DNA from: Macrostomum lignano
Taxonomy: Eukaryota
Direction of reading: 5' to 3'
Assembly: GCA_002269645.1 (NCBI GenBank)
Contig: NIVC01000084.1
Coordinates: 372,001 to 436,000, forward strand
Length of the DNA stretch: 64,000 nt
Position 1 is the stretch's first letter, and the number at the start of each line of letters is the position of its first letter. Shown piece after piece: positions 31,391 through 64,000 of the stretch. The position numbers and the translations under genes are program-made. Under the pieces are notes generated by a model that worked only from the letters and a program-made list of their open reading frames with translations, made no database searches and was not told the DNA's origin.

Positions 31391-32245
31391 TGCATATTTT
31401 GCATTCTTCATGTCTTCTATGCGTTCTAAGGCTTAAAGACACTTGGAGACTCCCTATAACTTTAATCGACTCTATATGCATTTGCACTAGCTCGCTGTCC
31501 AGATATTATCCTGCAGCAGTCCATGGACTCGCACGCAAACTATAACTCCACTGTTTGTTCACTGCAGTCAGGACTCGCCCTCGGCTTTAAGCACGGTTGT
31601 GCGGAGCACAGCAGCTAATCTGTGGGAGCAGACTGGTCTAAGCATAGCTAAAGCATAGCTACGAGTATACGGAAGTGGAGGACTTCGCGAGCGCATACCC
31701 GCACTTCTAGCTCGCACGGGTTTACTGTCTGACAGAGCATTAATCCCCTTTGTTAGTTCCTGCAACAAAAATGCTTCTGTCATTTCCTTAAAGCGGAGAG
31801 TTCAATGATTTGAGTAGCCAATAGTTGTAGTCAGACCGCGTTAGAATCTGTGTCGCTCATAAACAGGTCCTTTTTAAGCTCCTTTAATCGCACTACCAAC
31901 CGCTGGACAATTTTTTTCGGGCACACACACCATGCCCTAGTAATTTTAGAGCCCCACGATCCGCTCCTGGCAATAGAGCTTCCTCTCCAGATTGCTGAAT
32001 CTGGATCTCCTTGGCTCAGTACTCAACTCCGGCTCTGACAACTGCTTTTGGCCAATGAGCTTTAGCGCGAGGTCTGGCGCCCCTCAAATCTCACCCTCTC
32101 CCCTACTCCAAACGATCCAGCGGGGGGGGGGATAAAACTGCCCCCACAGGCCGGGCGCTCCCGAGCCCTTGCTGCTGCTGCAACCATTCCTTCAGTCGGT
32201 TTCCTTCAAGCTCCATTGTAGACTCGAAAATTAAAAAGCCAAATC

Positions 32246-32707
32246 ATGGCCAGCGAGAGTGAACAAGTTCTGAAGAAGGTGTTCGACAGCGCCGATGCTA
32301 ACGGCAACGGCACCATCGAGGCCAAGGAGCTGGTGAACCTGATCCGCGCCGCCGGGCACACCATCACCCGAGTTGAGGCCGAAGCTCTCATCAAAGAGTT
32401 CGACAAGAACGAGAACGGCACCCTGGAATTTGGCGAGTTCGTCAACATGATGAACAGCTTCCTGTCCAAGGGTGGGCACCGGCCCCAGTCCGAGAAGGAG
32501 AAGATCTTCCAGCTGCTGGACCAGAACAAGGACGGCGTGATCTCCCTGCAGGAGCTCCGGGCCGTCATGAACGACATCCTGAAGGAGGGCCTCTCCGACG
32601 AGCAGCTGCAGCAGATGCTGAACGAGGCTGACACCGACAAAGACGGTGCCATCAGCTTCGACGAGTTCAACAACATGGCTGCCAAGATGAAGATCTTCCA
32701 CGCCTGA
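32246..32707 (+). CDS. Intronless calmodulin-like protein, four canonical EF hands, 153 aa
   Basis: Loops DANGNGTIEAKE, DKNENGTLEFGE, DQNKDGVISLQE, DTDKDGAISFDE; strong GC3 codon bias. Too diverged to be canonical calmodulin. Confidence 0.95.
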   Translation: MASESEQVLKKVFDSADANGNGTIEAKELVNLIRAAGHTITRVEAEALIKEFDKNENGTLEFGEFVNMMNSFLSKGGHRPQSEKEKIFQLLDQNKDGVISLQELRAVMNDILKEGLSDEQLQQMLNEADTDKDGAISFDEFNNMAAKMKIFHA

Positions 32708-41727: not shown

Positions 41728-42587
41728 CAAAGAGTATTGAGGTCGCCTAGTATAGAGTGCCAATAAGGATGAAAATCTGAAGCCGATTTTTAGAATCCAC
41801 CCACCCCCTCCGGTCACCAAGCTGTTTAGTCTATGGCACAAGTTGTGGCTAGAATGGTGTACAAAGCCGATGCTCAGAAATATAAGACATTTCACACTTA
41901 GAAAATGAAATGTCTCAGACTCAGTCACCAGACTCAGTTGCCGTCGTCGATACACAACTCCGTAACAGCCATGCCATATAGCCCTTACGTCTGAACAACA
42001 AAAGCCATGCCACTAAAGTGCGCGGTAGCTAATTGCAATAACTGCGTTTCTGATGCATCTGTATCCTTCTTTCGTCTGCCTTTCAAGGACGTCGATCGTC
42101 TGAGAGAGTGGCGAGCACGGGTGCCACTAAGATCTGCTGGAGATGTCAAATGGATGCATATCATCAACCATCAGAGATATTGTAATTCGACAAGCCTATC
42201 AGGTTTTTTGCTTTTCCTACTGCTGCACCTTCACTCTGCCTGTTTATCACTTATGTTTTTTGTCTTTCCGACTCTGCTGCAAGTATCCTGCTCAACTTCT
42301 TTTCTCCTTACACAATTCAATCAATGTACGTACGGTTACAGTATAGATACAGAAATAAAGTCTTGAGGACGTTTTAAGCATACATGGTATTCGTCCAGCT
42401 ACATTAGCTACTTGTGTTTTTCTCATGTATATTTCTGAGCATCGGCTTTGGACACCATTCTAGCCACAACTTGTGCCATAGACTAAAAAGCTTGGTGACC
42501 GGATCGGGGGGTGGGTGGATTCTAAAAATCGGCTTCAGATTTTCATCCTTATTGGCACTCTATACTAGGCGACCTCAATACTCTTTG
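41728..42587 (+). mobile_element. Internally deleted P-superfamily-like DNA transposon (860 bp): ~160-bp TIRs starting CAAAGAGTATTG, perfect 8-bp TSD GCTGGATC, THAP remnant
   Basis: 41728-41884 is the reverse complement of 42428-42587. GCTGGATC occurs at 41720-41727 and 42588-42595. The internal ATG at 42007 gives MPLKCAVANC...FFRLP...W. Confidence 0.88.
42007..42200 (+). pseudogene. Truncated THAP zinc-finger coding remnant of a transposase
   Basis: C-x4-C, FFRLP and the conserved W are present. The terminal C-x2-H-F is not recognisable and the downstream ORF is low quality. Confidence 0.7.
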
Positions 42588-45216: not shown

Positions 45217-45598
45217 CGTACTTTGCAGTCCCTAACTCTCCCCAGCAACAATGCGGCTGTCAAGCAGGGCTCAGGCAGCGGGAAGAGCTGTGACAGGCTA
45301 CCGCGGGAGCAACAGCTGCAAGGGGAAGGAGAAACAGACGGAGACGAGTTGGAAGCTGCATGCAGGAGGAGTAGCAGAGGCGTGTACCAGTCACAGCTGC
45401 AGAGAGGTGAAGCAAACGCATCTCGCAGTGCTGAGAAGCAGCATTGGCTGCAGGCCAACCCCAACACGGCACTCAGAACACTGCCAAGAGCTGCCTTCCA
45501 CTCAGCATATTTTAGAGCGGTGGCAGAATTCAATGCATTCCCAGTCGGCCGGATAAGGCGCTGCAATAAAAAAATCGACAGACAGCCACTGGTGTGAA

Positions 45599-46099
45599 AT
45601 GTCCAACCAGAGCGTCACTGGGGGCGTCAGTCAGGAGATTCTACGCGAAGTGTTCGACAAATTCGATGTCGATGGCAGCGGAGCGATTGAGGCTCGCGAA
45701 CTCGTCAGGCTGATGCGGTCTGCCGGGCAGGCCCTGACCCGAGCTGAGGCCGACTCGCTAATCCGCGAGTTCGACAAGAACTCCAACGGCCGGTTGGAAT
45801 TCTCCGAGTTCGTAGCCATGATGGACGCCTTCGCCGAGAAAGCTAACGGCAAGTCGACATCGGCATCGACAGATGAAGATGTCGACGAGAGAAAGCGAAT
45901 TTTTGAGCTGCTGGACAGAAACAGGGACGGCTTCATCTCCAGGGCTGAGCTGGCTCACGTGATGAACGACCTGTTAGAGGAGGGTCTGAGCGAGCACGAC
46001 CTCGACCAGATGATGGCGGCCGCTGACACCGACGGAGACGGTCAGATCAGCTTTGAGGAGTTCAGCAGCCTGGCGGCCAGCATGAGGATCTTCCGCTAA
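45599..46099 (+). CDS. Intronless calmodulin-like protein, four EF hands, 166 aa; paralog of 32246-32707
   Basis: Loops [48 protein letters not shown]. Shares IREFDKN, VMNDLL.EGLS and M.IF motifs with the upstream copy. Confidence 0.95.
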
Positions 46100-49796: not shown

Positions 49797-52700
49797 ATGA
49801 GCAGAAATTTTCCAACTTTGCAAGAGAAAGTTGGCAATGCTTCTTCGAGGTAATCTAATCTTCAATGTTTTTCATTTTAAGATATTCGTGTTCTCCATGT
49901 ACTAAAATGGTTTGTCGGTAGGTATCTATCTAGGTACGTGATCGACTTTACCTCTCTACTAAAGCAGCTAATTTTTAGATATATGTTCTGTTTATTTGTT
50001 GACTGCTGCTTTTAAAAGGCTCGTACATCATTTAAGAAGAATTTACATTACTAACATTGTCTAGTCATTAAGTGCAGAACATCAGAATTCAGATGGCATG
50101 TGCTAAACTAAAAACCTTATTAATATTACTTTTGGTCAACTGGTTAAAAATATAATTGTATATTAATTGTCACAAGGTAATATATGTATACATAGATTTT
50201 TTGTTTTATTAGTAATAGCTTTAATAATTGCAATAATGCTTTTATAGCATTTTGTTTAATATCTTTGTTTTAGGTTGTTATGCTATTTATCAATAACTGC
50301 CATACCTTCTTAGGAATAAAAATTACTGAAAATCAATTTTCTAACTTTTCCTCTTAAACTATGCACTTAAAACTTATTTTATAATTATCATACATTAAAC
50401 ATAGAAAACGAAATTAAAAGTTAGACATTTTGCTTTGCATGGCTATCAAAATTCAAATGAAAGAATGTCTTTGAAAAAAAGCTATTTTTGCATTCAAAAC
50501 CCAAATCAAGATCTGTGCAAGACCGCGTCAGCTCAGTGAGTCAACGAGAGGCCCAAAATGTTCTTCGACTTCGCGTCAATCGAGTCTGCCTTGTACAGCA
50601 GCTCAATGTAGATCCCGTGGTTGATTACCTGAGACGTGAAGGTATTCTCAGCGACACCGATGTTCGCTTTGTGTCCCGCGGTGCCAACAGGTCTGAGAAG
50701 ACGCGAATGCTGCTGGACATGCTGCCCAGCAAGGATCCCAGCACCCAGTGGTACAACAAGTTCAGGTGGGAATGTGAGCTGCAAGTATTGCCGAATGAAC
50801 GCCCTTCTGTTCTTCGAAGCTCTTCTGAGAATCGCCCTCGAATCTCTATTCTGAAAATCGTTCTCTAATCTCTATTCTGAAAATCGCCATCTAATCTCTA
50901 TTCTGAAAACCAGCCCCTAGATCTAATCTACACCAGAGAATGCCCCCTAGATCTAATCTACACCAGAGAATGCCCCCTAGATCTAATCTACACCAGAGAA
51001 TGCCCTCTAGATCTAATCTGCACCAGAGAATGGCCCTCTAGATCTAATCTGCACCAGAGAATGGCCCTCTAGATCTAATTTGCACCAGAGAATGGCCCTC
51101 TAGATCTAATCTGCAATAGAGAATCGCCCTCTAGATCTAATCTGCAATAGAGAATCGCCCTCTAGATCTAATCTGCACCAGAGAATCGCCCTCTAGATCT
51201 AATCTGCACCAGAGACTCGCCCTCTAGATCTAATCTGCACCAGAGAATCGCCCTCTAGATCTAATTTGCACCAGAGAATGGCCCTCTAGATCTAATCTGC
51301 AATAGAGAATCGCCCTCTAGATCTAATCTGCACTAGAGTTGCCCTCTAGATCTAATTTGCACCAGAGTTGCCCTCTAGATCTAATTTGCACTAGAGTTGC
51401 CCTCTAGATCTAATCTGCACTAGAGTTGCCCTCTAGATCTAATTTGCACTAGAGTTGCCCTCTAGATCTAATTTGCACTAGAGTTGCCCTCTAGATCTAA
51501 TCTGCACTAGAGTTGCCCTCTAGATCTAATCTGCACTAGAGTTGCCCTCTAGATCTAATTTGCACCAGAGTTTCCCTCTAGATCTAATCTGCACCAGAGT
51601 TGCCCTCTAGATCTAATTTGCACCAGAGTTGCCCTCTAGATCTAATTAGCACCAGAGTTGCCCTCTAGATCTAATTTGCACCAGAGTTGCCCTCTAGATC
51701 TAATTTGCACCAGAGTTGCCCTCTAGATCTAATCTGCACTAGAGTTGCCCTCTAGATCTAATCTGCACTAGAGTTGCCCTCTAGATCTAATCTGCACTAG
51801 AGTTGCCCTCTAGATCTAATTTGCACCAGAGTTTCCCTCTAGATCTAATCTGCACCAGAGTTGCCCTCTAGATCTAATTTGCACCAGAGTTGCCCTCTAG
51901 ATCTAATTTGCACCAGAGTTGCCCTCTAGATCTAATTTGCACCAGAGTTGCCCTCTAGATCTAATTTGCACCAGAGTTGCCCTCTAGATCTAATCTGCAC
52001 TAGAGTTGCCCTCTAGATCTAATCTGCACCAGAGTTGCCCTCTAGATCTAATTTGCACCAGAGTTGCCCTCTAGATCTAATCCACACCAGAGGAACCTCT
52101 AGAGCAAGCGATCTAGAAGCAAGTCCCGTCACCTACCCAGGACGTCTCTATCGGCAACATCCACCGTCGACGCCACCACCGCTCGGAATCATCAAATCTT
52201 GGTTGACTTTCTAGACAGCACAAATCTAGCCAATCTGAAATCGAGTTCCACAGACTCAGTGCAACACTCTGAGCAGCAGCAGCAGCCGCCGCTGCCGCCG
52301 ATTCAACCTCAAGAAGACGATCCGACGTCTGCAGAGCATCGTCAGCGTTGGAAGGCGCTACGCTCGGCGGCCAAGTCCAGACTGAGTCAGCTCGAAGCCA
52401 ATCCGTCTATTCGATTGAGTCGCCTACCGGAGGACTTGCCCGAGCACCTGGCTCGAACTTACGAAGCCTGGACAGCTAACGGCGGCAGCGGTCGCTCCGC
52501 GGCCAAGCACGAGCGTCGATGCCTGTCGCGATTGCGAACCGCCGACGACTTCGCCTTGCAAGCTGCCGGTTCAGCCAATTCCGAACGACTCATGCTGGTC
52601 TGCTTCATTTCGCCGCTGCACCGTCTGCTGTGCGACATTCGCAAGCGTCATCTGGCTTATAAATACTTACTAGCCGATGCGCCTAGCCTTGGCAACGCCT

Positions 52701-55700
52701 TAGCAACCGCGTTTGCTAACCTATCTGCCGGGCCGGACGGTCGACGACTTTTTACCGACGGTCGATGGTCGCGGTACGCGGCTACTAAGCTGGCAAATTT
52801 GGCCGGCCGACTGTTCGACTTTCTGGCCGGAGTCAATCTGTTTAGAGAGTGCGAGACGGTTGCCGGGTCTTTGTGCGACTATCTGAATAGGTGAGGCTGC
52901 TTAAGTATCTGAGCTGTCTGAAGTAAAACTTGTTTCACACGTTGGTGTAACTCTCGGCGATCTAGTGACAAAATAATTCCATCACAACATCCGATGATAC
53001 AGGTATTGGCTTAGCTCAGGAGTCACTGGAATAATGTCGCCGAAGATGTACGTTAAGCCATGTTCATACATTCGCAATCCCCCCGATGTACATCGGCCGT
53101 GCAACTTACCTATGAAAGAAACCTAAGCAAAAATTAACAAAATTTTGGGTAAACGGCAGGAGTAACTATAGCTTGATTATTAAGGCTAAATGTCTCGGCA
53201 CCTAATTAGTGCTATGTCTATTTTGGGTTGGCATTTTTGTCACTTACCTTGGCTAAGCCCTTCGCCAGGGCGTTGCACATGTATGGCCATGTTGCCATAT
53301 TTATTACATCCATGTGACACACAAAGCCACCGACGTACGACGTACAAGCGACTGTATACAACCCTCACTAATCTCCTTGAAAAGGTTCGGCGGCGACTGC
53401 GTGGAAGCCCTGCTGCCAACCTACCGCGCCAGCGTCAGGCTGATGGAAGCCCGGCTCAACAACGCCGACTACCAGCTGGCCGACGCTGCCAGTCAGGCGG
53501 CCCAGGCCACGGCGGCCAGAATCAACCGCTTGTCATTTGGCCAAAAAGTGATGGACAACCAGGCCCTGTTGCAGGCACAGATTGGTCGGATGCTGCTGGA
53601 CCAGGGTAGCCTGGCGTCCGCGTTGGGTGCTTTTGGTAGCGCCATCTCGGTGAGTGCATGCTAATTTGTTTTTAGAAGTTTTTAGAATATGCAAGCATAA
53701 GAATATTAATTTTGATTAATTATTTGCCAAGTGCCGGCCGTCTGCGGGAGGCCTGCAGAGTTTTAATTCCTACTCTTTACAACTCATTCTTAGTCTAATA
53801 ATTAAACAAATTATAGAATATAGTTTTCTTTTATTAAACAAGAGTCATTATTAATTGTTTTACTTATAGTTTTAAATGGTAAAATAAATGATCAATAACT
53901 TTATTAAATATTTAGTTATAATATATTTTTCCTACGTTTTTAAGTATTAAAAAATAAATAATTATACAAAAAAGTAAGTAAAAATTTAAATCAAAAAGAC
54001 TTATTAAATTAAAATTATGGTAATTATACATAAATTGCGTTGTCTCTTGAGCAAATATAGAAAAGATTTCTTTTATACTTGGAAAATTTAATAAAATATC
54101 AATTTCAGACTGTGGACCTTAATGATACAGAGGCCGTATTCAAAATTCTCTACCACGCTTTGCAACTTTACCTAACAAACTCCGATGAAGGAAAAGCCGA
54201 AAAATTAGCTGTTGCTTGCGTTCAGCATGCTTAGTAAGTACTTTTTTGTAATTTCCATACCCGCCTTATTTAATAGTAACATAAATTTAAATTTATTATT
54301 ATTTCAGCAAATTTTACAAAACAGAATCGCCGGAATACATCAAGTCGTTGTTGAACTTTGTCAAATTTTCAAACGCCTTCTGTCAAGATGATTTTGGAGT
54401 CGAAGTTGCTGTGGTAAGTTTGGCCACGGGTGTGCAAAGTGTCATTTTCTACAGTTTAGAAATATTTCAACAACATTCTTAGAAAACTATATTGTCTCAT
54501 TTGTATGAAAATCGAATTTTATTTCTACTGTATCGAAATACGATGTCTTTCTAAAAAAACAAACCGAAGTCATAGAAAATTTTGTTTTTATGCAATATTT
54601 ACTGTGGTGTAATTTTTTTAGCTTTTTAGTAAGTAATTCGGTAATTCTTAAGTATCTCGTGATTTAAGAACCATGTAAGTATCTTAAAACAGTCCAATGC
54701 AAATTTTGAATACGAATCAATTTGATACTGTGGCGCCCTTCGTTCGAGAAACTTTAATTAACCGTATATTAATCTAACATTCTATAAATCATGCACAAAT
54801 CCAAATGTCGCGATCTTTGCAGAAGTTTATCTTCACCTAATAATATTCTACGAGCTAGTTTCAAACATTTATTAATGAATACTAAATTATGTACTATATG
54901 AAAACAGCATAGTAAATATCTGTGTAATTATCGATAAATTATCAGCACGTTGAATTTGTTATACTGTAGGAATTAATATTTTTAGAACTTTCTCGAAAAC
55001 CAAGTCATATCTATAAATATACGGCAGGCGCATCGTCATTTCTTCATCTTCCCCATTTTCTTTATTCGTTCCTAATACACCAATAAACAAAGGAACCACT
55101 GATTTCATTTGCTGACGAATGCTAACATCAATCCAACTAATTCCGCCAATGTCGTTCTGTTCTAACAAAATATAATTTTTAGATTACACCTAATTCTTAG
55201 AAAATATCGCATCAGCTAAAAAACTTCGTTCTTTTCGTAAAAATTGGATCTCATTCTATAGGAAACTTATTCTCTCTTTCTAGGAAAAATCAATTCCGGT
55301 TCTAAGGCTAATTCTCACCTCATTCTTATAAAACTTGATAAATTTCCTATCCATCAAATTCCAGAACGCGTCTTTATTCGCTCAGCTCATCCTGGGCTAC
55401 CAGCACCCGCTACTAGCCGAAGTCCAGTCGCACCTGTCGTTGGCGCAGCTTCTACGGCTCCGTCATCGCAGCCGCCGCGGTCAGGGTGCAACTGCGGAGC
55501 CCCAAGAAGTTGTCGCTCACGTGGAAGCTTCTCTAGCCGCAGTCAGAATGAGCTCTGGCGAGTCGGCATCTCAGCATCCCAACGCTGCCTCCTTGATGAC
55601 TAATCTAACCCAAGCTGCTCGCCTAGCGAACCCCGCCATCCTGCCAGTTGAACTGCTTCAAGTCGCCATCGAATTCGGTAGAAAATCTGTTGAAATTTTC

Positions 55701-58700
55701 TCGAATACCATCGGTCGGCACAGTCCGGCAGCTGTGCAAGCCAGAATCTGTCTGGGCAGGCTTCTGGCCGATGTGCCTTCGGGGGAGTACCGTCCGGAGG
55801 CTGAGCAGCTGGCTGATGAAGCTCTAGAAGCGCTGATTGACAGCCAACCAGCTCAAGGGCACCTGCTGCTCAGAGCTAAACTCCAGTTGGCTAAGTAGGC
55901 CATTTTTTAGTCTGTCAGATTTTTTATTCTGAGATTTTTAGTCTGAAATATTTGAGTCTGAGGTTTTGAGTCTGTGGGATTTTGAGCTGTGAGATTTTGA
56001 GTCTGTGAGATTTTGAGTCTGTGAGATTTTGAGTCTGAGATGTTAAGTCTGGGATTTGGATAATGAGATTTTGAGTCTGTGAGATTTTGAGTCTGGGTGA
56101 TTTTGAGTCTGAGATGTTAAGTCTGGGATTTGGATACTGAGATTTTGAGTCTGTGAGATTTTGAATCTGGGAGATTTTGAATCTATGAGATTTTGAATCT
56201 GGGAGAGTTTGAGTCTGGGATTTTGAATCTGTGAGATTTTGAATCTGTGAGATTTTGAATCTGGGTGATTTTTAGTCTCTGAGATTTGAGCCTTTGAGAT
56301 TTTGAATCTGAGAGATGTTGAATCTATGAGATTTTGAATCTGGGAGAGTTTGAGTCTGGGATTTTGAGTATGAGATTTTGAATCTGGGAGAGTTTGAGTC
56401 TGGGATTTTGAATCTGTGAGATTTTGAATCTGGGAGAGTTTGAGTCTGGGATTTTGAATCTGTGAGATTTTGAATCTGGGAGAGTTTGAGTCTGGGATTT
56501 TGAATCTATGAGATTTTGAATCTGGGAGAGTTTGAGTCTGGGATTTTGAATCTGTGAGATTTTGAATCTGTGAGATTTTGAATCTGTGAGATTTTGAATC
56601 TGTGAGATTTTGAATCTGTGAGATTTTGAATCTGAGAGATGTTGAATCTATGAGATTTTGAATCTGGGAGAGTTTGAGTCTGGGATTTTGAGTATGAGAT
56701 TTTGAATCTCGGAGATTTTGAATCTGGGAGAGTTTGAGTCTGGGATTTTGAGTATGAGATTTTGAGTCTGTCAAATTCTGAGTCTGGGATTTTGAGTCTG
56801 GTTGATTTCGAATCTATGATATTTTGAGTCTGATATTTTGAGTCTGCTAGTCACTGCATGAGTCTGTCAATTTTAATTGTTTAACTCGGCTATTAGATCA
56901 ACATTTGGTAAACTTGGGTCATCTAATTGAGATTCAATAATTTAAATACTTTTTTCATCTCTAAAGGCTGCACCGAGCCGCCGGCAATCCCAAACGAGCC
57001 CTTGCCCTGGCCAATGACGTCATCGAACAGACTGAATGCTACGGCTCTTATATTCGATGGCTAGACCAGGCCTACATTCTCGCTATTGAGTTGGTAAGCG
57101 AGTCCAAAGACTTGGCTGAAGCTGCTGCTGCAACGACGACAAGCGATGAGATGACGGCTAAACGGCAAGATTGGCTGAGCAGGCATCCGATGTCGCGGTC
57201 TGCTCAGGGCCTGGATTGGGCCACTTTGCACGATCGACCCGACAAAGAGTTCTTTCGGCGATTCCGGGCCTGGGGCGACGACAGGAAGGAACTGGTGAGG
57301 CAGGTCGCTGCCGCCGCAGCCGCTGCCGCTGCCACCACGGCAGATGGTCAGGGAGCTGAAGGCAGCAAAACTGAGTGAGTTTGAGCGCGCTCTAAACAGC
57401 TCTACCCTGGTCTGATTCTGTTAGAATGTGTTTTCACTCTGTGAATCAAGGTGTCTAGTTTGGTTAAGAACGTGTCTAGCTCGGTTGAGAACGTGTCTAG
57501 TTCGGTTAAGAACGTGTCTAGTTCGGTTAAGAACGTGTCTAGTTCGGTTAAGAACGTGTCTAGTTCGGTTAAGAACGTGTCTGGTTCGGTTAAGAACGTG
57601 TCTGGTTCGGTTAAGAACGTGTCTAGTTCGGTTAAGAACGTGTCTGGTTCGGTTAAGAACGTGTCTGGTTCGGTTAAGAACGTGTCTGGTTCGGTTAAGA
57701 ACGTGTCTAGTTCGGTTAAGAACGTGTCTGGTTCGGTTAAGAACGTGTCTAGTTCGGTTAAGAACGTGTCTGGTTCGGTTAAGAACGTGTCTGGTTCGGT
57801 TAAGAACGTGTCTAGTTCGGTTAAGAACGTGTCTGGTTCGGTTAAGAACGTGTCTAGTTCGGTTAAGAACGTGTCTAGTTCGGTTAAGAACGTGTCTAGT
57901 TCGGTTAAGAACGTGTCTAGTTCGGTTAAAAACGTGTCTAGTTCGGTTAAAAACGTGTCTAGTTCGGTTAAGAACGTGTCTAGTTCGGTTAAGAACGTGT
58001 CTAATTCGTTTAAGAACGTGTCTGGTTAAAAACTCACTTTACCAGAACTCACTTTGAACATTCTTTTCAGACAAAATAAAGCCAAAGCAGCTCAAAACCC
58101 AGAGTCCAGAACTGCTGTTGACGGATCCGAGACGGCAGCTGAAGCAAAACAGCAACGCGTGATAAAATGTGCGATTTCTTTCAGTTTAAATTAAGAATAT
58201 TTGTCCTTAAAAGGCTTTTTATATTAAGAAATCATCTTGTTTATCTTTAATTCCACAGTGCTGCTCATAGGCGATTCCGGAGTCGGGAAATCCTGCATGT
58301 TGCGCAGATTTGCTGAAAACTCATTTGACGAAAGTCAAAACGCGACGCCAACAATTGGTGTGGACTTCAAAATTGTTCAAAATGAAATCGATGGGTTAAG
58401 CATCAAGTGCCAGATCTGGGACACCGCTGGACAAGAGAGGTGATTCCTTGCATTTTTACTTGTGCGCACTTGCCTCTGATAAACCCCGAATCTCTACCCC
58501 CTAATGTACACTTATCTCTTACCTACCCCATTCAATCTCTACCCCTCCAAATGTACAATTGTCTCTTATCGACCCATTCAATCTCTACCCCTTCCAAATG
58601 TACACTTGTCTCTTATCAACTCATTCAATCTCTACCCCTTCCAAATGTACACTTGTCTGACCAACCCCATTCAATCTCTACCCCCTAATGTACACTTGCC

Positions 58701-61700
58701 TCTGACTTCAACAAAACTCCAGATTCCGCACGATAACATCATCCTACTATCGAGGCTGCGCCGGCGCTCTGCTGGTCTTCGACGCCTCGAACCGCGACAG
58801 CTTCGACAGCTGCGAGCGCTGGCTGCAGGAGCTGCGGGCCTCCGCGCCAGAGTCCGTGCACGTGGTTCTGGTGGCCAACAAGAGCGACTCGGATGAGGCC
58901 GCCGTGACTCAGGAGGAGGCGGCCGAGTTCGCCAAGTCGCACGGCATCGAGCTGTGCTGGGGCGTCAGCGCCCGCACCGGACAGAATGTCGGCCAGGCAT
59001 TCAGGGGCCTGCAGAGTCGGGTGCTGCAGAGCAAAGTTGATGGGTTAGTTATTGAACTACCGAAAGTTTCAAAATAGAAAGCATAGCAACACTATAGTCT
59101 CGCATAGCAACACGCTAGTCTCGCATGGCAACACGATACTCTCGCATGGTAACCAAGAACTTAGAGTTTCGCCTTCCCACAGACTGAGTTCAAATCAGGC
59201 TCCAATGAATTCAACTGACATGCGACAATTGCCTCAGTTGGTGCCTAAGAAAAGTGAAAATTCTAACGAACATATTGATTATCAGATAAAAGGTAAGCAG
59301 GATTGAACTTTTTTATTGTAGAAGGTAAAAATAAAGAATTATTGTATTACGCTCATTCAATTTATCATTCAGTTCTTCTAATTGGCGACTCCGGTGTTGG
59401 AAAGTCCAGCTTGCTTCAGCGATTTGCAGACAAAGAATTTGATGCCACTAACGAAATGCAACAAACCATTGGAGTGGAATTTCGAGCTGTGAAAGACAAT
59501 ATTGATGGCTGTCGAGTCAAGAGTGTGTTCTGGGACACAGCTGGTGCGGAGAGGTAAGTTTGAGATGGAATTACGCTAGCCTGAGAAGGCTTATATGCTA
59601 GACAGAGGCCTCACACCTGTTAGACTGGGGCTTCACACTTGTTAGACAGAGGCCTCACACCTATTAGACTGGGGCTTCACACTTGTTAGACAGAGGCCTC
59701 ACACCTGTTAGACTGGAGCTTCACACTTGTTAGACAGAGGCCTCACACCTGTTAGACTGGGGCTTTAATCTGTTAGACAGAGGCCTCACACCTGTTAGAC
59801 AGAGGCCTCACACCTGTTAGACAGAGGCCTCACACCTGTTAGACAGAGGCCTCACACCTGTTAGACAGAGGCCTCACACCTGTTAGACAGAGGACTCACA
59901 CCTGTTAGACAGAGGCCTCACACCTGTTAGACAGAGGCCTCACACCTGTTAGACAGAGGCCTCACACCTGTTAGACTGGGGCTTCACACCTGTTAGACAG
60001 AGACACCTGTTAGACTGGGGCCAAACCCTTCCATAAATTACCCGAAATCCGCAGGTTCCGCTCCATCACGAGCGCCTACTACCGAGGCTGCGCCGGCGCT
60101 CTGCTGGTCTTTGACGCCTCGAACCGCGACAGCTTCGACAGCTGCGAGCGCTGGCTGCAGGAGCTGCGGGCCTCCGCGCCAGAGTCCGTGCCCGTGGCTC
60201 TGGTGGCCAACAAGAGCGACTCGGATGAGGCCGCCGTGACTCAGGAGGAGGCGGCCGAGTTCGCCAAGTCGCACGGCGTCGAGCTGTGCTGGGGGGTCAG
60301 CGCCCGCACCGGACAGAATGTCGGCCAGGCATTCAGGGGCCTGCAGAGTCGGGTGCTGCAGAGCCAGAGCCAGCAATTCGGGTTGGTATTTGGCCTTCGC
60401 AACAGCATTTCATCCATTTAGCTATACATTCTCATCGTCATAGCAACACAACGTCATCCACATAGCAACACAACTTCGTCCCATGGCAACACAATCTCAA
60501 GCACATAGCAACACGATTTCATCCCCATAGCAACACAACTTCATCCCCATAACAACGCAAATATTTTCTCTTTAAAACCGATTCCTAGTTTGGCACAGAC
60601 CCAGCAGTCAAACGAATCGGCTACTTTCGCTCCGAAGGCCATCAATACGAGTAAATCTACTGAGCAGTCGAAGGAGTCTCCCATTTCGAAGCCAGCAGCA
60701 GTGGGACAGGCAAACCTGAACGATGATCGCTCTCCTGACTATGTGATAAAAAGTGAGATATAGCATCCTTGTCTTTACCATCTGACTGTTACGTGGGTGC
60801 GAAGTGAGATGGATATGCGGAGTGAGCTGGGTGCGGAGTGCGGCGGGTGTGGAGTGAGGTGGGTGTGGAGTGAGGTGGGTGTGGAGTGAGCTGGGTGCGG
60901 AGTGCGGCGGGTGTGGAGTGAGGTGGGTGTGGAGTGAGCTGGGTGCGGAGTGCGGCGGGTGTGGAGTGAGGTGGGCGCGGGGTGAGGTGGGTGCGGAGTG
61001 AGGTGGGTGCGGAGTGAGGTGGGTGCGGAGTGAGGTGGGCGTGAAGTGGGGTGTGTGTGGAGTGAGGTGGGTGTGGAGTGAGGTGGGTGTGGAGTGAGGT
61101 GGGTGTGGAGTGAGGTGGATGTGGAGTGAGCTGGGTGCGGAGTGCAGTGGGTGTGGAGTGAGGTGGGTGTGGAGTGAGCTGGGTGCGGAGTGCGGCGGTT
61201 GTGGAGTGAGGTGGGCGCGGGGTGAGGTGGGTGCGGAGTGAGGTGGGTGCGGAGTGAGGTGGGTGCGGAGTGAGGTGGGCGTGAAGTGGGGTGGGTGGAG
61301 TGAGGTGGGTGTGGAGTGAGCTGGGTGCGGAGTGCGGCGGGTGTGGAGTGAGGTGGGCGCGGGGTGAGGTGGGTGCGGAGTGAGGTGGGTGCGGAGTGAG
61401 GTGGGTGCGGAGTGAGGTGGGCGTGAAGTGGGGTGTGTGTGGAGTGAGGTGGGTGTGGAGTGAGGTGGGTGTGTAGTGAGGTGGGTGCGGAATGAGGTGA
61501 GTGCGGAGTGAGGTGGGTGCGGAGTGGAGTGAGGTTCGGAGGTGGGTGCAGAGTGAGGTGGGTGTGAGAATGCTCACAATGCCCACACCCACACGCAGCG
61601 GTGCTAATCGGAGACTCCGGCGTCGGCAAGTCCTGCCTGGTCCGCCAATTTATTGACCAGGAATTTGACGAGAGCCTCAAGGCAACGCCCACCATCGGAG

Positions 61701-64000
61701 TGGACTTTCGCGTGGTGAACAGCGACATTGACGGGTCGCGAGTGAAAACTCAGATTTGGGATACGGCAGGACAACAGAGGTGAGGTTGAAGTTGGATAGC
61801 TCGCTCTTTCCTTTATTAACTTTATTTTTGGACGAAATTGTGTTATAAAACCCATTAGATTTACACATAAGTTACTATCATTAACTCATTAGACAGCAAG
61901 GACCTTAACACCTGGATCATAATAACTGAATCATGAATCTAGGCTCATAAACCTATATTAAAACACCGGAATCATGACACTCAAATTATAAATCTTGGAT
62001 CATAATTATCTGAATCATAACACCTGGATCATTACACCTGGATTATAACACCTGGATTATAACACCTGGATTATAACACCTGGATCATAACACCTGGATT
62101 ATAACACCTGGATTATAACACCTGGATTATAACACCTGGATCGTACCACCTGGATCATAACACCCGGATCATAACACCCGGATTAGAACACCTGGATCAT
62201 AACACCTGGACCATAATACCTGAATCATAACACCTGGATCATAAAACTTAAACCATAACACCCCTTAGACCGCCCTTCGCCCCTCCCCGACATCCGCAGG
62301 TTCCGCTCCATCACGAGCGCCTACTACCGAGGCTGCGCCGGCGCTCTGCTGGTCTTCGACGCCTTGAACCGCGACAGCTTCGACAGCTGCGAGCGCTGGC
62401 TGCAGGAGCTGCGGGCCTCCGCGCCAGAGTCCACGCCCGTGGCTCTGGTGGCCAACAAGAGCGACTCGGATGAGGCCGCCGTGACTCAGGAGGAGGCGGC
62501 CGAGTTCGCCAAGTCGCACGGCGTCGAGCTGTGCTGGGGGTCAGCGCCCGCACCGGACAGAATGTCGGCCAGGCATTCAGGGGCCTGCAGAGTCGGGTGC
62601 TGCAGAGCCAGAGCCAGCAATTCGGGTTGGTATTTGGCCTTCGCAACAGCATTTCATCCATTTAGCTATACATTCTCATCGTCATAGCAACACAACGTCA
62701 TCCACATAGCAACACAACTTCGTCCCCATGGCAACACAATCTCAAGCACATAGCAACACGATTTCATCCCCATAGCAACACAACTTCATCCCCATAACAA
62801 CGCAAATATTTTCTCTTTAAAACCGATTCCTAGTTTGGCACAGACCCAGCAGTCAAACGAATCGGCTACTTTCGCTCCGAAGGCCATCAATACGAGTAAA
62901 TCTACTGAGCAGTCGAAGGAGTCTCCCATTTCGAAGCCAGCAGCAGTGGGACAGGCAAACCTGAACGATGATCGCTCTCCTGACTATGTGATAAAAAGTG
63001 AGATATAGCATCCTTGTCTTTACCATCTGACTGTTACGTGGGTGCGAAGTGAGATGGATATGCGGAGTGAGCTGGGTGCGGAGTGCGGCGGGTGTGGAGT
63101 GAGGTGGGTGTGGAGTGAGGTGGGTGTGGAGTGAGCTGGGTGCGGAGTGCGGCGGGTGTGGAGTGAGGTGGGTGTGGAGTGAGCTGGGTGCGGAGTGCGG
63201 CGGGTGTGGAGTGAGGTGGGCGCGGGGTGAGGTGGGTGCGGAGTGAGGTGGGTGCGGAGTGAGGTGGGTGCGGAGTGAGGTGGGCGTGAAGTGGGGTGTG
63301 TGTGGAGTGAGGTGGGTGTGGAGTGAGGTGGGTGTGGAGTGAGGTGGGTGTGGAGTGAGGTGGATGTGGAGTGAGCTGGGTGCGGAGTGCAGTGGGTGTG
63401 GAGTGAGGTGGGTGTGGAGTGAGCTGGGTGCGGAGTGCGGCGGTTGTGGAGTGAGGTGGGCGCGGGGTGAGGTGGGTGCGGAGTGAGGTGGGTGCGGAGT
63501 GAGGTGGGTGCGGAGTGAGGTGGGCGTGAAGTGGGGTGGGTGGAGTGAGGTGGGTGTGGAGTGAGCTGGGTGCGGAGTGCGGCGGGTGTGGAGTGAGGTG
63601 GGCGCGGGGTGAGGTGGGTGCGGAGTGAGGTGGGTGCGGAGTGAGGTGGGTGCGGAGTGAGGTGGGCGTGAAGTGGGGTGTGTGTGGAGTGAGGTGGGTG
63701 TGGAGTGAGGTGGGTGTGTAGTGAGGTGGGTGCGGAATGAGGTGAGTGCGGAGTGAGGTGGGTGCGGAGTGGAGTGAGGTTCGGAGGTGGGTGCAGAGTG
63801 AGGTGGGTGTGAGAATGCTCACAATGCCCACACCCACACGCAGCGGTGCTAATCGGAGACTCCGGCGTCGGCAAGTCCTGCCTGGTCCGCCAATTTATTG
63901 ACCAGGAATTTGACGAGAGCCTCAAGGCAACGCCCACCATCGGAGTGGACTTTCGCGTGGTGAACAGCGACATTGACGGGTCGCGAGTGAAAACTCAGAT
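49797..64000 (+). CDS. CARD - helical/TPR-like - tandem multi-Rab GTPase protein (at least 4 Rab domains; runs off the window; 1-bp frameshift at ~62540)
   Basis: Exons 49797-49849, 50511-50765 (CARD), ~52117-52890, 53385-53649, 54109-54233, 54308-54413, 55365-55894, 56967-57374, 58071-58168, 58259-58439, 58723-59043, 59183-59292, 59373-59553, 60055-60381, 60589-60752, 61599-61779, 62300-62625, 62834-62997, 63844-end. Every junction is GT-AG and phase-matched through 61779. The first ATG exon and the 52117 acceptor are less certain. Confidence 0.8.
50511..50765 (+). other. CARD (death-fold) domain exon
   Basis: [35 protein letters not shown]...[15 protein letters not shown]...WYNKF follows the CARD pattern (L..NR..LV..L.V..V.DYL....IL....; R..K.R.LLD.LP.K). 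Confidence 0.85.
50910..52085. repeat. ~29-31-bp intronic minisatellite (CCCTCTAGATCTAATTTGCACCAGAGTTG)
   Basis: About 39 copies. Confidence 0.96.
55930..56850. repeat. Degenerate 15-16-bp-based intronic repeat (GAGATTTTGAATCTG[T/G])
   Basis: Direct reading. Confidence 0.92.
57452..58027. repeat. 21-bp minisatellite (AAGAACGTGTCTAGTTCGGTT) in the intron joining the TPR and Rab regions
   Basis: About 27 copies. Confidence 0.97.
58259..59043 (+). other. Rab domain 1 (exon A 58259-58439, exon B 58723-59043)
   Basis: [49 protein letters not shown]. Confidence 0.95.
58490..58700. repeat. ~46-bp intronic minisatellite (TACACTTGTCTCTT..CCCATTCAATCTCTACCCC..AAATG)
   Basis: About 5 copies. Confidence 0.85.
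59373..60381 (+). other. Rab domain 2 (exon A 59373-59553, exon B 60055-60381)
   Basis: DYQIK|[46 protein letters not shown]. Confidence 0.95.
59590..60020. repeat. 22-bp intronic minisatellite (CACCTGTTAGACAGAGGCCTCA)
   Basis: Direct reading. Confidence 0.93.
60790..61565. repeat. 16-bp G-rich intronic minisatellite (GGTGGGTGCGGAGTGA)
   Basis: Direct reading; duplicated at 63035-63810. Confidence 0.95.
61599..62625 (+). other. Rab domain 3 (exon A 61599-61779, exon B 62300-62625 with a 1-bp deletion)
   Basis: DYVIK|[32 protein letters not shown]. The G-run at ~62536-62540 has 5 G versus 6 G in domain 2. Confidence 0.9.
61905..62250. repeat. 14-bp intronic minisatellite (CCTGGATTATAACA)
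   Basis: Direct reading. Confidence 0.9.
63035..63810. repeat. Second copy of the G-rich 16-bp intronic minisatellite
   Basis: Apparently identical to 60790-61565. Confidence 0.95.
63844..64000 (+). other. Rab domain 4, exon A (truncated by the window end)
   Basis: cag|CGGTGCTAATCGGAGACTCC..., identical to 61599 onward. Confidence 0.92.

Follow-up and report, generated by a model that had tools for sequence, protein, structure and literature searches.

Whether a CARD, a long helical region and a row of Rab-type GTPase domains, which follow one another on the forward strand of a Macrostomum lignano contig, belong to one protein or to several is the question raised by the locus analyzed here. 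The window, i.e. the whole stretch of 64,000 nucleotides under study, comprises positions 372,001 to 436,000 of contig NIVC01000084.1 of assembly Mlig_3_7 (GCA_002269645.1), and the coding sequence in question begins at window position 49797. A preliminary description made from the letters of the sequence had proposed a single gene for a CARD, TPR-like helices and at least four tandem Rab domains within 49797-64000. As set out below, one gene encoding a CARD, a helical region and a chain of Rab-type guanine nucleotide-binding (G) domains is the best explanation of the observations and, in our estimate, a reasonably probable one. The gene does not end within the window: its 25 exons occupy some 18.9 kb, the start codon being the ATG at 49797 and the stop codon lying at window-equivalent position 68706, approximately 4.7 kb beyond the window.

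Positions past 64000 were read from L004 (NIVC01000084.1:429101-450706), which overlaps the window with 6,900 of 6,900 bases identical. They were converted by the relation window = L004 + 57,100 and are given as window-equivalent throughout. With one G restored, the spliced open reading frame (ORF) comprises 2,247 codons, in which the CARD is followed by the helical region, Rab1, Rab2, three near-identical Rab3 units (Rab3, Rab3′ and Rab3′′) and a divergent Rab4 with a tail. All of the 19 exons inside the window are of the AG...GT type, all 48 splice dinucleotides of the gene are intact and, apart from single insertions or deletions (indels), no stop is found in the 2,247 codons. In the following, the N-half and C-half of each Rab domain are denoted by a and b, and the linkers by L0 to L3.

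A protein search with the spliced N-terminal model yielded only two matches (P0001 and P0002), both of them M. lignano 'hypothetical proteins' that are 97-98 % identical to the model and encoded by duplicated copies of the locus on other contigs (L001 and L002; 96-98 % identity between the duplicates). A third GenBank model (P0124) was recovered by a second query consisting mostly of the linkers and the divergent Rab4. A query composed of Rab1b-L1-Rab2-L2-Rab3a returned matches dominated by ordinary Rabs, the M. lignano models not being among them. The three models are:

P0001: BOX15_Mlig018981g1 (PAA53536.1, UniProt A0A267DWG7 'CARD domain-containing protein'), 1,063 residues, locus L001
P0002: BOX15_Mlig031168g2, 1,003 residues, partial, locus L002
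P0124: BOX15_Mlig023764g1, 344 residues, locus L004 and thus the present locus, not flagged as partial

Between the ATG (49797) and the end of Rab1, the exon structure matches that of P0001 and P0002 exactly. The complete exon model is as follows:

49797-49849 (+): exon 1 with the start codon; N-terminus identical in P0001; GT donor; conserved in L001 and L002
50511-50765 (+): exon 2, CARD (residues ~38-106); Pfam CARD; dN = 0 in comparison with L001
52141-52890 (+): exon 3, helical (250 residues), without a known domain; junction as in P0001
53385-53649 (+): exon 4, helical; spliced as in P0001 and P0002; AG/GT kept in L001 and L002
54109-54233 (+): exon 5, helical; spliced as in P0001 and P0002; AG/GT kept in L001 and L002
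54308-54413 (+): exon 6, helical; spliced as in P0001 and P0002; AG/GT kept in L001 and L002
55365-55894 (+): exon 7, helical; holds the two peptides quoted in the preliminary description and the sub-threshold TPR_12 and TPR_14 matches
56967-57374 (+): exon 8, helical, then Ala-rich; donor just before the in-frame read-through stop
58071-58168 (+): linker L0; ends ..QQRVIK and opens Rab1; no Met; 3′ end in phase 1
58259-58439 (+): Rab1 N-half; P-loop GDSGVGKS, switch I, WDTAGQE; Pfam Ras; present in P0001 and P0002
58723-59043 (+): Rab1 C-half; RFRTIT, YYRGC, NKSD, SAR; Pfam Ras; donor used by P0001 and P0002
59183-59292 (+): linker L1; two in-frame ATGs (..PMNSTDMRQ..); homologous acceptor used by P0001 and P0002
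59373-59553 (+): Rab2 N-half; G3 motif WDTAGAE; under purifying selection relative to the Rab1 and Rab3 N-halves
60055-60381 (+): Rab2 C-half; at the nucleotide level 95 % identical to that of Rab1
60589-60752 (+): linker L2; 54 residues, ..DYVIK; no in-frame ATG
61599-61779 (+): Rab3 N-half; WDTAGQQ; no Met
62300-62625 (+): Rab3 C-half; part of copy two of the 2,245-bp unit; contains the G5 run that breaks the frame
62834-62997 (+): linker L2, second copy
63844-64000 (+): Rab3′ N-half; exon cut by the window end, reaching window-equivalent 64024
window-equivalent 64545-64871, from L004: Rab C-half after the Rab3′ N-half
window-equivalent 65080-65243, from L004: linker L2, third copy
window-equivalent 66090-66270, from L004: Rab3′′ N-half
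window-equivalent 66791-67347, from L004: Rab3′′ C-half and L3 in one exon; covered by P0124
window-equivalent 67527-67701, from L004: Rab4 N-half; covered by P0124
window-equivalent 68094-68706, from L004: Rab4 C-half, tail and stop; covered by P0124

The junctions that had been proposed by hand-splicing (57374|58071, 59043|59183, 59292|59373, 60381|60589 and 60752|61599) are all bordered by GT...AG and have compatible phases. As to the first of them, transcripts that always terminate at the stop following exon 8 had been named as an observation that would speak against a single gene; instead, the junction 57374|58071 is present both in P0001 (..GSKTEQNEAKAAQ..) and in P0002, so that exon 8 is spliced onto L0 in both RNA-derived models. 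Within one ORF P0001 and P0002 cover the junctions of exons 1-8, exon 8|L0, L0|Rab1a and Rab1a|Rab1b, and both of them continue from the Rab1b donor to the L1 acceptor. In the case of P0002 the tail ..AKLMD* corresponds to Rab1b with a 1-nt deletion spliced onto the first bases of L1. At the opposite end of the gene P0124, which derives from the present locus and begins at the first Met (MKLQ..) of the exon shared by the Rab3′′ C-half and L3, uses L3|Rab4a and Rab4a|Rab4b. The AG/GT dinucleotides of every splice site are kept in L001 and L002, and in L001 769 codons can be read without interruption between L1 and the stop.

The introns are nearly all filled by minisatellites, each with its own, different unit (14 to 47 bp, up to 62 copies), and the exons appear as GC-rich islands between them. 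Such arrays are located at 50913-52092, 55904-56846, 57451-58027, 58489-58703, 59599-60002, 60793-61564 and 61906-62262.

In Pfam searches six Ras-family stretches were found in the translated gene, with a total of 919 bits as compared to 609 bits for Roc. Three full domains and the N-half of a fourth are located within the window; the gene with its six domains exceeds the minimum of four proposed earlier, although the third and fourth are near-identical tandem copies and not independent domains. The G1 (GxxxxGKS), G3 and G4 (NKxD) motifs are intact in all six, and the translation furthermore displays the Rab-family motifs IGVDF/IGVEF, K.QIW, RFR(T/S)IT, YYRGC and LVFDA. The best PDB matches of the Rab2 unit are Ypt31/32, Rab11A/B, Rab2 and Rab1 (E 1e-41 to 1e-37), and Rab4 is more divergent than the other G domains. 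The G3 motif varies between units, reading WDTAGQQ in the Rab3 units and WDTAGAE in Rab2, where the catalytic Gln is replaced by Ala; judged from this substitution, Rab2 is probably locked in the GTP-bound state. No match to the COR family was obtained among the Pfam hits.

The linkers between the G domains consist of 32-86 residues, the longest being L3 (86 residues), which shares its exon with the preceding Rab C-half. As had been noted before, every linker exon ends in a DY.IK-type sequence (..RVIK, DYQIK or DYVIK) that leads into the next P-loop; these residues supply the start of the first β-strand of the following domain, always in phase 1. Each G domain is additionally split by an intron after DTAGQ(E/Q)R, in phase 2. 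Prenylation cysteines (CC, CXC, CCXX or CAAX) are found neither at any unit end nor at the true C-terminus outside the window (..SSSSSAESAE), where Rab4 is followed by a basic, acidic and Ser-rich tail of 95 residues, and none of the units contains a stop codon of its own in the spliced model, both in agreement with the preliminary description. Its further statement that no unit possesses a start of its own holds for Rab1 and all Rab3 units but not for Rab2, since L1 contains two in-frame ATGs. Stand-alone Rabs of about 200 residues are thus not what the units resemble, being devoid of stops and, in Rab1 and all Rab3 units, of a usable Met. Met is absent from L0 and L2, from the Rab3 N-halves and from the C-halves of Rab3 type, and across residues 1097-1903, about 800 residues from Rab2 to Rab3′′, no in-frame Met occurs at all.

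The high number of G domains in this locus is due to an in-frame triplication of a unit composed of C-half, linker and N-half, which the intron within every Rab domain, placed behind DTAGQ(E/Q)R, made possible. The repeat and its only lesion are:

60041-64000 (+): tandem repeat with a 2,245-bp unit, comprising Rab C-half, L2, Rab3 N-half and introns
62536-62540 (+): G5 run; the sister copy (~60297) has G6; only lesion in the 2,247-codon model

Segments 60041-61755 and 62286-64000 are 99.6 % identical copies of this unit and differ by 5 substitutions and 2 indels. Three copies are present here as compared to one each in L001 and L002, which results in six versus four G domains with the same domain order in all three loci. 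The fourth Rab in the window was also considered as an independent old domain; given the 99.6 % identity this was rejected.

The two halves of the Rab domains have diverged to very different extents. The N-halves of Rab1, Rab2 and Rab3 share 56-66 % protein identity, with a saturated proportion of synonymous differences (pS 0.69-0.77) and a much lower proportion of nonsynonymous ones (pN 0.21-0.28; P <= 2.5e-4), and their sequences identify them as old duplicates under purifying selection that have been retained as coding without a start of their own. The C-halves, on the other hand, are about 95 % identical in DNA, a likeness which indicates gene conversion. Measured against L001, the ratio of nonsynonymous to synonymous substitution rates (dN/dS) amounts to 0 in the CARD, 0.22 across the helical part, 0.35 in Rab1, 0.29 in Rab2 (binomial P 0.002) and 0.38 in the segment from L1 to Rab3a (P 0.003). 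The 3′ parts of L001 and L002 differ at 3 positions in 1,336 nt and their non-coding flank is equally alike, hence a selection test has no power in this comparison.

The N-terminal CARD proposed earlier was recovered above the Pfam threshold: PF00619 matches residues 38-106 on exon 2 with E 3.5e-9 and 37 bits (cut-off 23.9). The closest solved sequence in the PDB is the CARD of RAIDD (E 4.9e-5), and the AlphaFold2 model of P0001 displays five helices within residues 29-108, with predicted local distance difference test (pLDDT) values of ~50-60. The region that follows consists of approximately 720 residues, probably helix-turn-helix repeats, without a recognizable NTPase. The five or six helical exons noted before correspond to six in the present model. 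Their assignment as TPR-like is weakly supported, the matches to TPR profiles staying below threshold (exon 7: TPR_12 with E 0.008 and 16.7 bits versus a cut-off of 30.1, TPR_14 with 14 versus 23.5). A sequence search of the PDB with 705 residues of the helical region gave nothing below E 0.37. In the AlphaFold2 model of P0001 residues ~206-770 are predicted, with low confidence, as ~28 helices of 15-20 residues; an alpha-solenoid is likely. No Pfam match to NACHT or NB-ARC was found in residues 1-863, including the part between the CARD and the repeats; NACHT/nSTAND matches in the C-terminal part comprise only ~20 residues around each Rab P-loop and were rejected. Exon 3 is the sole part of the gene with a distant homologue: when 1.84 billion representatives were scanned exhaustively with HMMER, only P0001 and a UniParc entry (P0123, 386 residues) were returned. 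P0123 aligns collinearly to residues 17-369 with 38 % identity (E 1e-60) and carries a CARD as well. By this measure the helical region seems to be lineage-restricted.

Several observations weigh against a single long product. None of the RNA-derived GenBank models spans L1|Rab2a, Rab2a|Rab2b, Rab2b|L2, L2|Rab3a or Rab3a|Rab3b, and a separate product of 344 residues (P0124) was called by the annotation for the 3′ end. Each of the three loci contains a lesion: in the present one the G5 run breaks the assembled frame in the third Rab C-half, leading to a stop after codon 1503, so that the uninterrupted frame across the Rab domains assumed earlier exists once one G is restored but not as assembled; in L002 Rab1b is short of 1 nt and Rab3a has lost 4 nt; and in L001 the ORF stops after Rab1 owing to a 306-bp repeat inserted behind the L1 acceptor. 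This insertion is certainly real, and the L001 copy yields a product of CARD, helical region and one Rab. The conservation of the C-halves is partly a consequence of gene conversion and not of independent selection, and the AlphaFold2 model of P0001, calculated from a two-sequence alignment, is of low confidence (pLDDT 42.6, predicted template modelling score 0.31). On these grounds the locus might instead give rise to separate products, namely a CARD-helical-single-Rab protein of ~1,000-1,500 residues, whose end lies at L1 or the frameshift or beyond either, and the internally started P0124, with the middle Rab units representing 3′ or 5′ untranslated regions or decaying exons. P0001 and P0002 do end after Rab1, P0124 does start at an internal Met without being flagged partial, and L1 does hold in-frame ATGs; we nevertheless regard this arrangement as rather unlikely. 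The ends of P0001 and P0002 are accounted for by the repeat insertion and the 1-nt indel, respectively, both nevertheless use the L1 acceptor, the Rab2 and Rab3 N-halves have been under long-term purifying selection, the Rab3 units are without Met, and the downstream ORF of L001 remains open. Moreover, the GenBank annotation was based on RNA-seq data together with a transcriptome assembled de novo (StringTie/TACO), with trans-splice and poly(A) signals as cut points and ORFs from TransDecoder, and repeat-overlapping transcripts were dropped from the set before submission (PMC5730564), while RNA-seq assembly breaks up in duplicated, repeat-rich loci (PMC5730564; PMC8629364).

The same lesions, found in three of three assembled loci, could also mean that the downstream Rab units were recently inactivated and that the repeat number is partly an assembly artefact, no living allele encoding the six-Rab ORF. 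The tandem copies are 99.6 % identical, and the string CTGGGGGTCAGC, common to the G5 site of the present locus and to the broken Rab1b of L002, breaks two different C-halves and may represent a genuine variant propagated by gene conversion. We judge such decay to be improbable: with the exception of the single indels the frame and all splice dinucleotides are preserved over the full 2,247 codons, dN/dS is well below 1, and the copies are distinct from each other and do not represent a collapsed or expanded repeat. Indels in G runs are a typical residual error of PacBio assemblies. The present assembly, redundant with 180 Mb in blocks >=95 % identical, was made with PacBio/Canu and polished with short reads (PMC5730564), and since such a procedure is unreliable in 95-99 % duplicates, leftover indels are to be expected, also with regard to the separate products considered above, though the indels may be real. 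An operon-like array of independent Rab genes, co-transcribed, resolved by spliced leader (SL) trans-splicing and translated singly, would fit the ~15 % of M. lignano genes that lie in operons and an SL that ends in ATG (PMC8629364), and likewise the name of P0002, in which 'g2' denotes a transcriptional unit cut into more than one gene. It is hardly credible for this locus. The SL ATG would be out of frame at each L and Rab N-half acceptor, with stops within 3-22 codons (after 11, 2, 21 and 2 codons at L1, Rab2a, L2 and Rab3a, respectively); no in-frame Met occurs in L0, L2, Rab3a or the Rab3 C-halves; the units are without a stop codon unless an intron is retained; and each unit needs the preceding exon, since its first β-strand is split, in the same phase, between the linker exon and the next one. 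Because of the missing Met, the SL frame and the split strand, independent Rab cistrons are excluded for Rab1 and the Rab3 units and are unlikely for Rab2. The one-gene model draws its support from the junctions of P0001, P0002 and P0124, from the Met-free stretch, the SL frame and the signature of selection. What the preliminary description left out is the near-identity of the tandem copies, the frameshift and the in-frame ATGs of L1.

In terms of this one-gene model, the GenBank entries are each incomplete, owing to a repeat insertion, an indel or an internal Met start, and each contains at most one G domain. The three 'hypothetical proteins' are fragments of one gene family, broken by repeats, by insertion of a repeat element and by probable homopolymer errors. 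L001 and L002, which have the same neighbours, CFAP90 (upstream, minus strand) and a beta-TrCP-like gene (downstream), form a mosaic: they are near-identical in exons 1-6 and again from the last Rab C-half onward including the non-coding flank (98.9 %), and differ by 3-6 % between exon 7 and Rab3a, which suggests recombination or gene conversion among copies. The repeat inserted in L001 occurs several times in these loci:

53100-53251 (-): copy of the multi-copy repeat (~150-300 bp) in the window
L001 17705-18010, 20624-20800 and 12438-12560: further copies
L002 11696-11818: further copy

It is probably a non-autonomous mobile element, and its 306-bp copy in L001 encodes the 31 C-terminal residues of P0001 (PAA53536.1) together with its stop codon. 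The 5′-partial model Mlig031168g2 starts at L002 position 10001 (~window 50545), inside the CARD exon and just past an internal AG (window 50541). This start may reflect a trans-splice site within exon 2 or an artefact of the annotation pipeline. The suffix 'g2' indicates that the annotation split the transcriptional unit into two or more 'genes'.

If the long ORF is translated as a whole, the protein would be a soluble scaffold, as the G domains do not represent membrane-anchored Rabs because cysteines for geranylgeranylation are absent. In this scaffold the CARD would recruit a CARD partner, and the G domains would act as nucleotide-dependent interaction or oligomerization switches, by analogy taking the place of NACHT/NB-ARC in CARD-STAND proteins or of ROC in DAPK1. 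The divergence of the N-halves, which contain switch I, the interswitch and the specificity regions, as opposed to the homogenized C-halves suggests, as far as sequences permit, different partners for the individual domains. RAIDD/CRADD binds caspase-2. In platyhelminths a caspase-2-type CARD caspase and APAF-1 are reported to be present, and CRADD and FADD to be absent (PMC11463336). A far more speculative idea, to which we assign little likelihood, is that of an innate-immune 'tripwire', in which the non-prenylated Rab-like domains would serve as decoys for Rab-targeting pathogen effectors. Engagement by an effector would release or oligomerize the RAIDD-like CARD and thereby activate the flatworm caspase-2-type caspase; this would amount to an NLR-like guard built on Ras-superfamily G domains instead of NACHT/NB-ARC, in a phylum without CRADD and FADD. 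The varying copy number (4 vs 6), the concerted C-halves, the diverged effector-facing N-halves and the altered G3 fit such a role without showing it. Nothing among the results on the gene points to cilia, which the preliminary description had brought into play along with membrane traffic.

In order to place this architecture, it was compared to known systems. With CARD-STAND/NLR platforms (APAF-1, NOD1/2, NLRC4) it shares the N-terminal CARD, a P-loop NTPase module, helical repeats and the character of a large cytosolic protein. In those proteins, however, the NTPase is situated between CARD and repeats, whereas here NACHT/NB-ARC is missing and four to six Ras-superfamily G domains are placed C-terminally to the repeats. 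ROCO proteins, especially DAPK1 (ROC-COR plus death domain), likewise combine a death-fold domain with a Ras-like G domain, and Pfam Roc matches each G domain of the present gene; the differences are the lack of COR, the higher score for Ras/Rab (919 vs 609 bits), a CARD in place of the death domain and the presence of several G domains. The large Rabs CRACR2A/Rab46, Rab44 and RASEF/Rab45 resemble the present protein by a long non-GTPase extension preceding a Rab-type domain. Each of them has a single Rab domain, extensions made up of EF-hands and coiled coils, and a prenylation site at the C-terminus, in contrast to the CARD, the four to six G domains and the absent prenylation site found here. 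Concatenation of G domains as such is known from GIMAP8 (three AIG1 domains), tandem IRGs and Miro (two G domains), which belong to other GTPase families and are without a death-fold domain; the GIMAP and IRG families are immune-related and variable in copy number.

The closest parallels to the Rab chain are uncharacterized ORFs with 3-6 Rab domains from Rotaria (P0125, P0006), Logan SRR22388065_663197 (P0005) and MGnify (P0129), in which the linkers end in ..(D/E)Y(D)..(F/L)K. As in the present gene they have no internal prenylation sites, but they lack the CARD and the helical region and share only ~32-38 % identity. Several gene models of the bdelloid rotifer Rotaria contain up to five or six Ras stretches, and the MGnify ORF has three Rab domains. 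In the Logan contig (L003) positions 328-2037 form a complete ORF of 569 codons with three Rabs, preceded by an upstream stop and followed by AATAAA near the 3′ end, which gives it an mRNA-like appearance. These multi-Rab ORFs are probably independent inventions. A literature search on tandem or multi-Rab proteins and on M. lignano CARD proteins returned nothing relevant to this gene. The architecture had been held to be undescribed, and this stands insofar as no paper was found; a CARD with one Ras domain is already deposited in GenBank and UniProt, though, and multi-Rab ORFs without CARD exist. Within the database searches made, it is the fusion of CARD and helical region to a Rab chain that is unique, and not the Rab chain alone.

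If the long ORF is expressed, it would be the first case found of a death-fold domain fused to Rab-type GTPases and would join the small number of proteins in which Ras-superfamily domains occur more than twice. Its Rab domains would then be soluble, concatenated switch modules and not prenylated tags of membrane identity. Because flatworms are without CRADD and FADD (PMC11463336), the RAIDD-like CARD scaffold would furthermore be a candidate for an alternative platform of caspase-2 activation, an idea that can be tested in M. lignano since this species is amenable to RNA interference and transgenesis. The exon design is instructive as well: with an intron at the same place and in the same phase of each G domain, tandem duplication can insert complete domains without disturbing the reading frame, and one half of a domain can be homogenized while the other half diverges.

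Elsewhere in the window a (TCTG)n microsatellite of ~4 kb occupies positions 1 to ~4200 and causes the extreme AT skew (-0.98) at the window start. Three further ORFs were noted:

32222-32704 (+): single-exon ORF, calmodulin-like, four EF-hands (Pfam EF-hand_7, E ~1e-33)
45557-46096 (+): single-exon ORF, calmodulin-like, four EF-hands (Pfam EF-hand_7, E ~1e-33)
41995-42363 (+): ORF starting with MPLKCAVANCNN.., THAP zinc finger at threshold (E 6.6e-5, 24.0 bits vs 23.9)

The two calmodulin-like ORFs, which lie 13 kb from each other, appear to have arisen by duplication, and the THAP-like ORF may be derived from a transposon.

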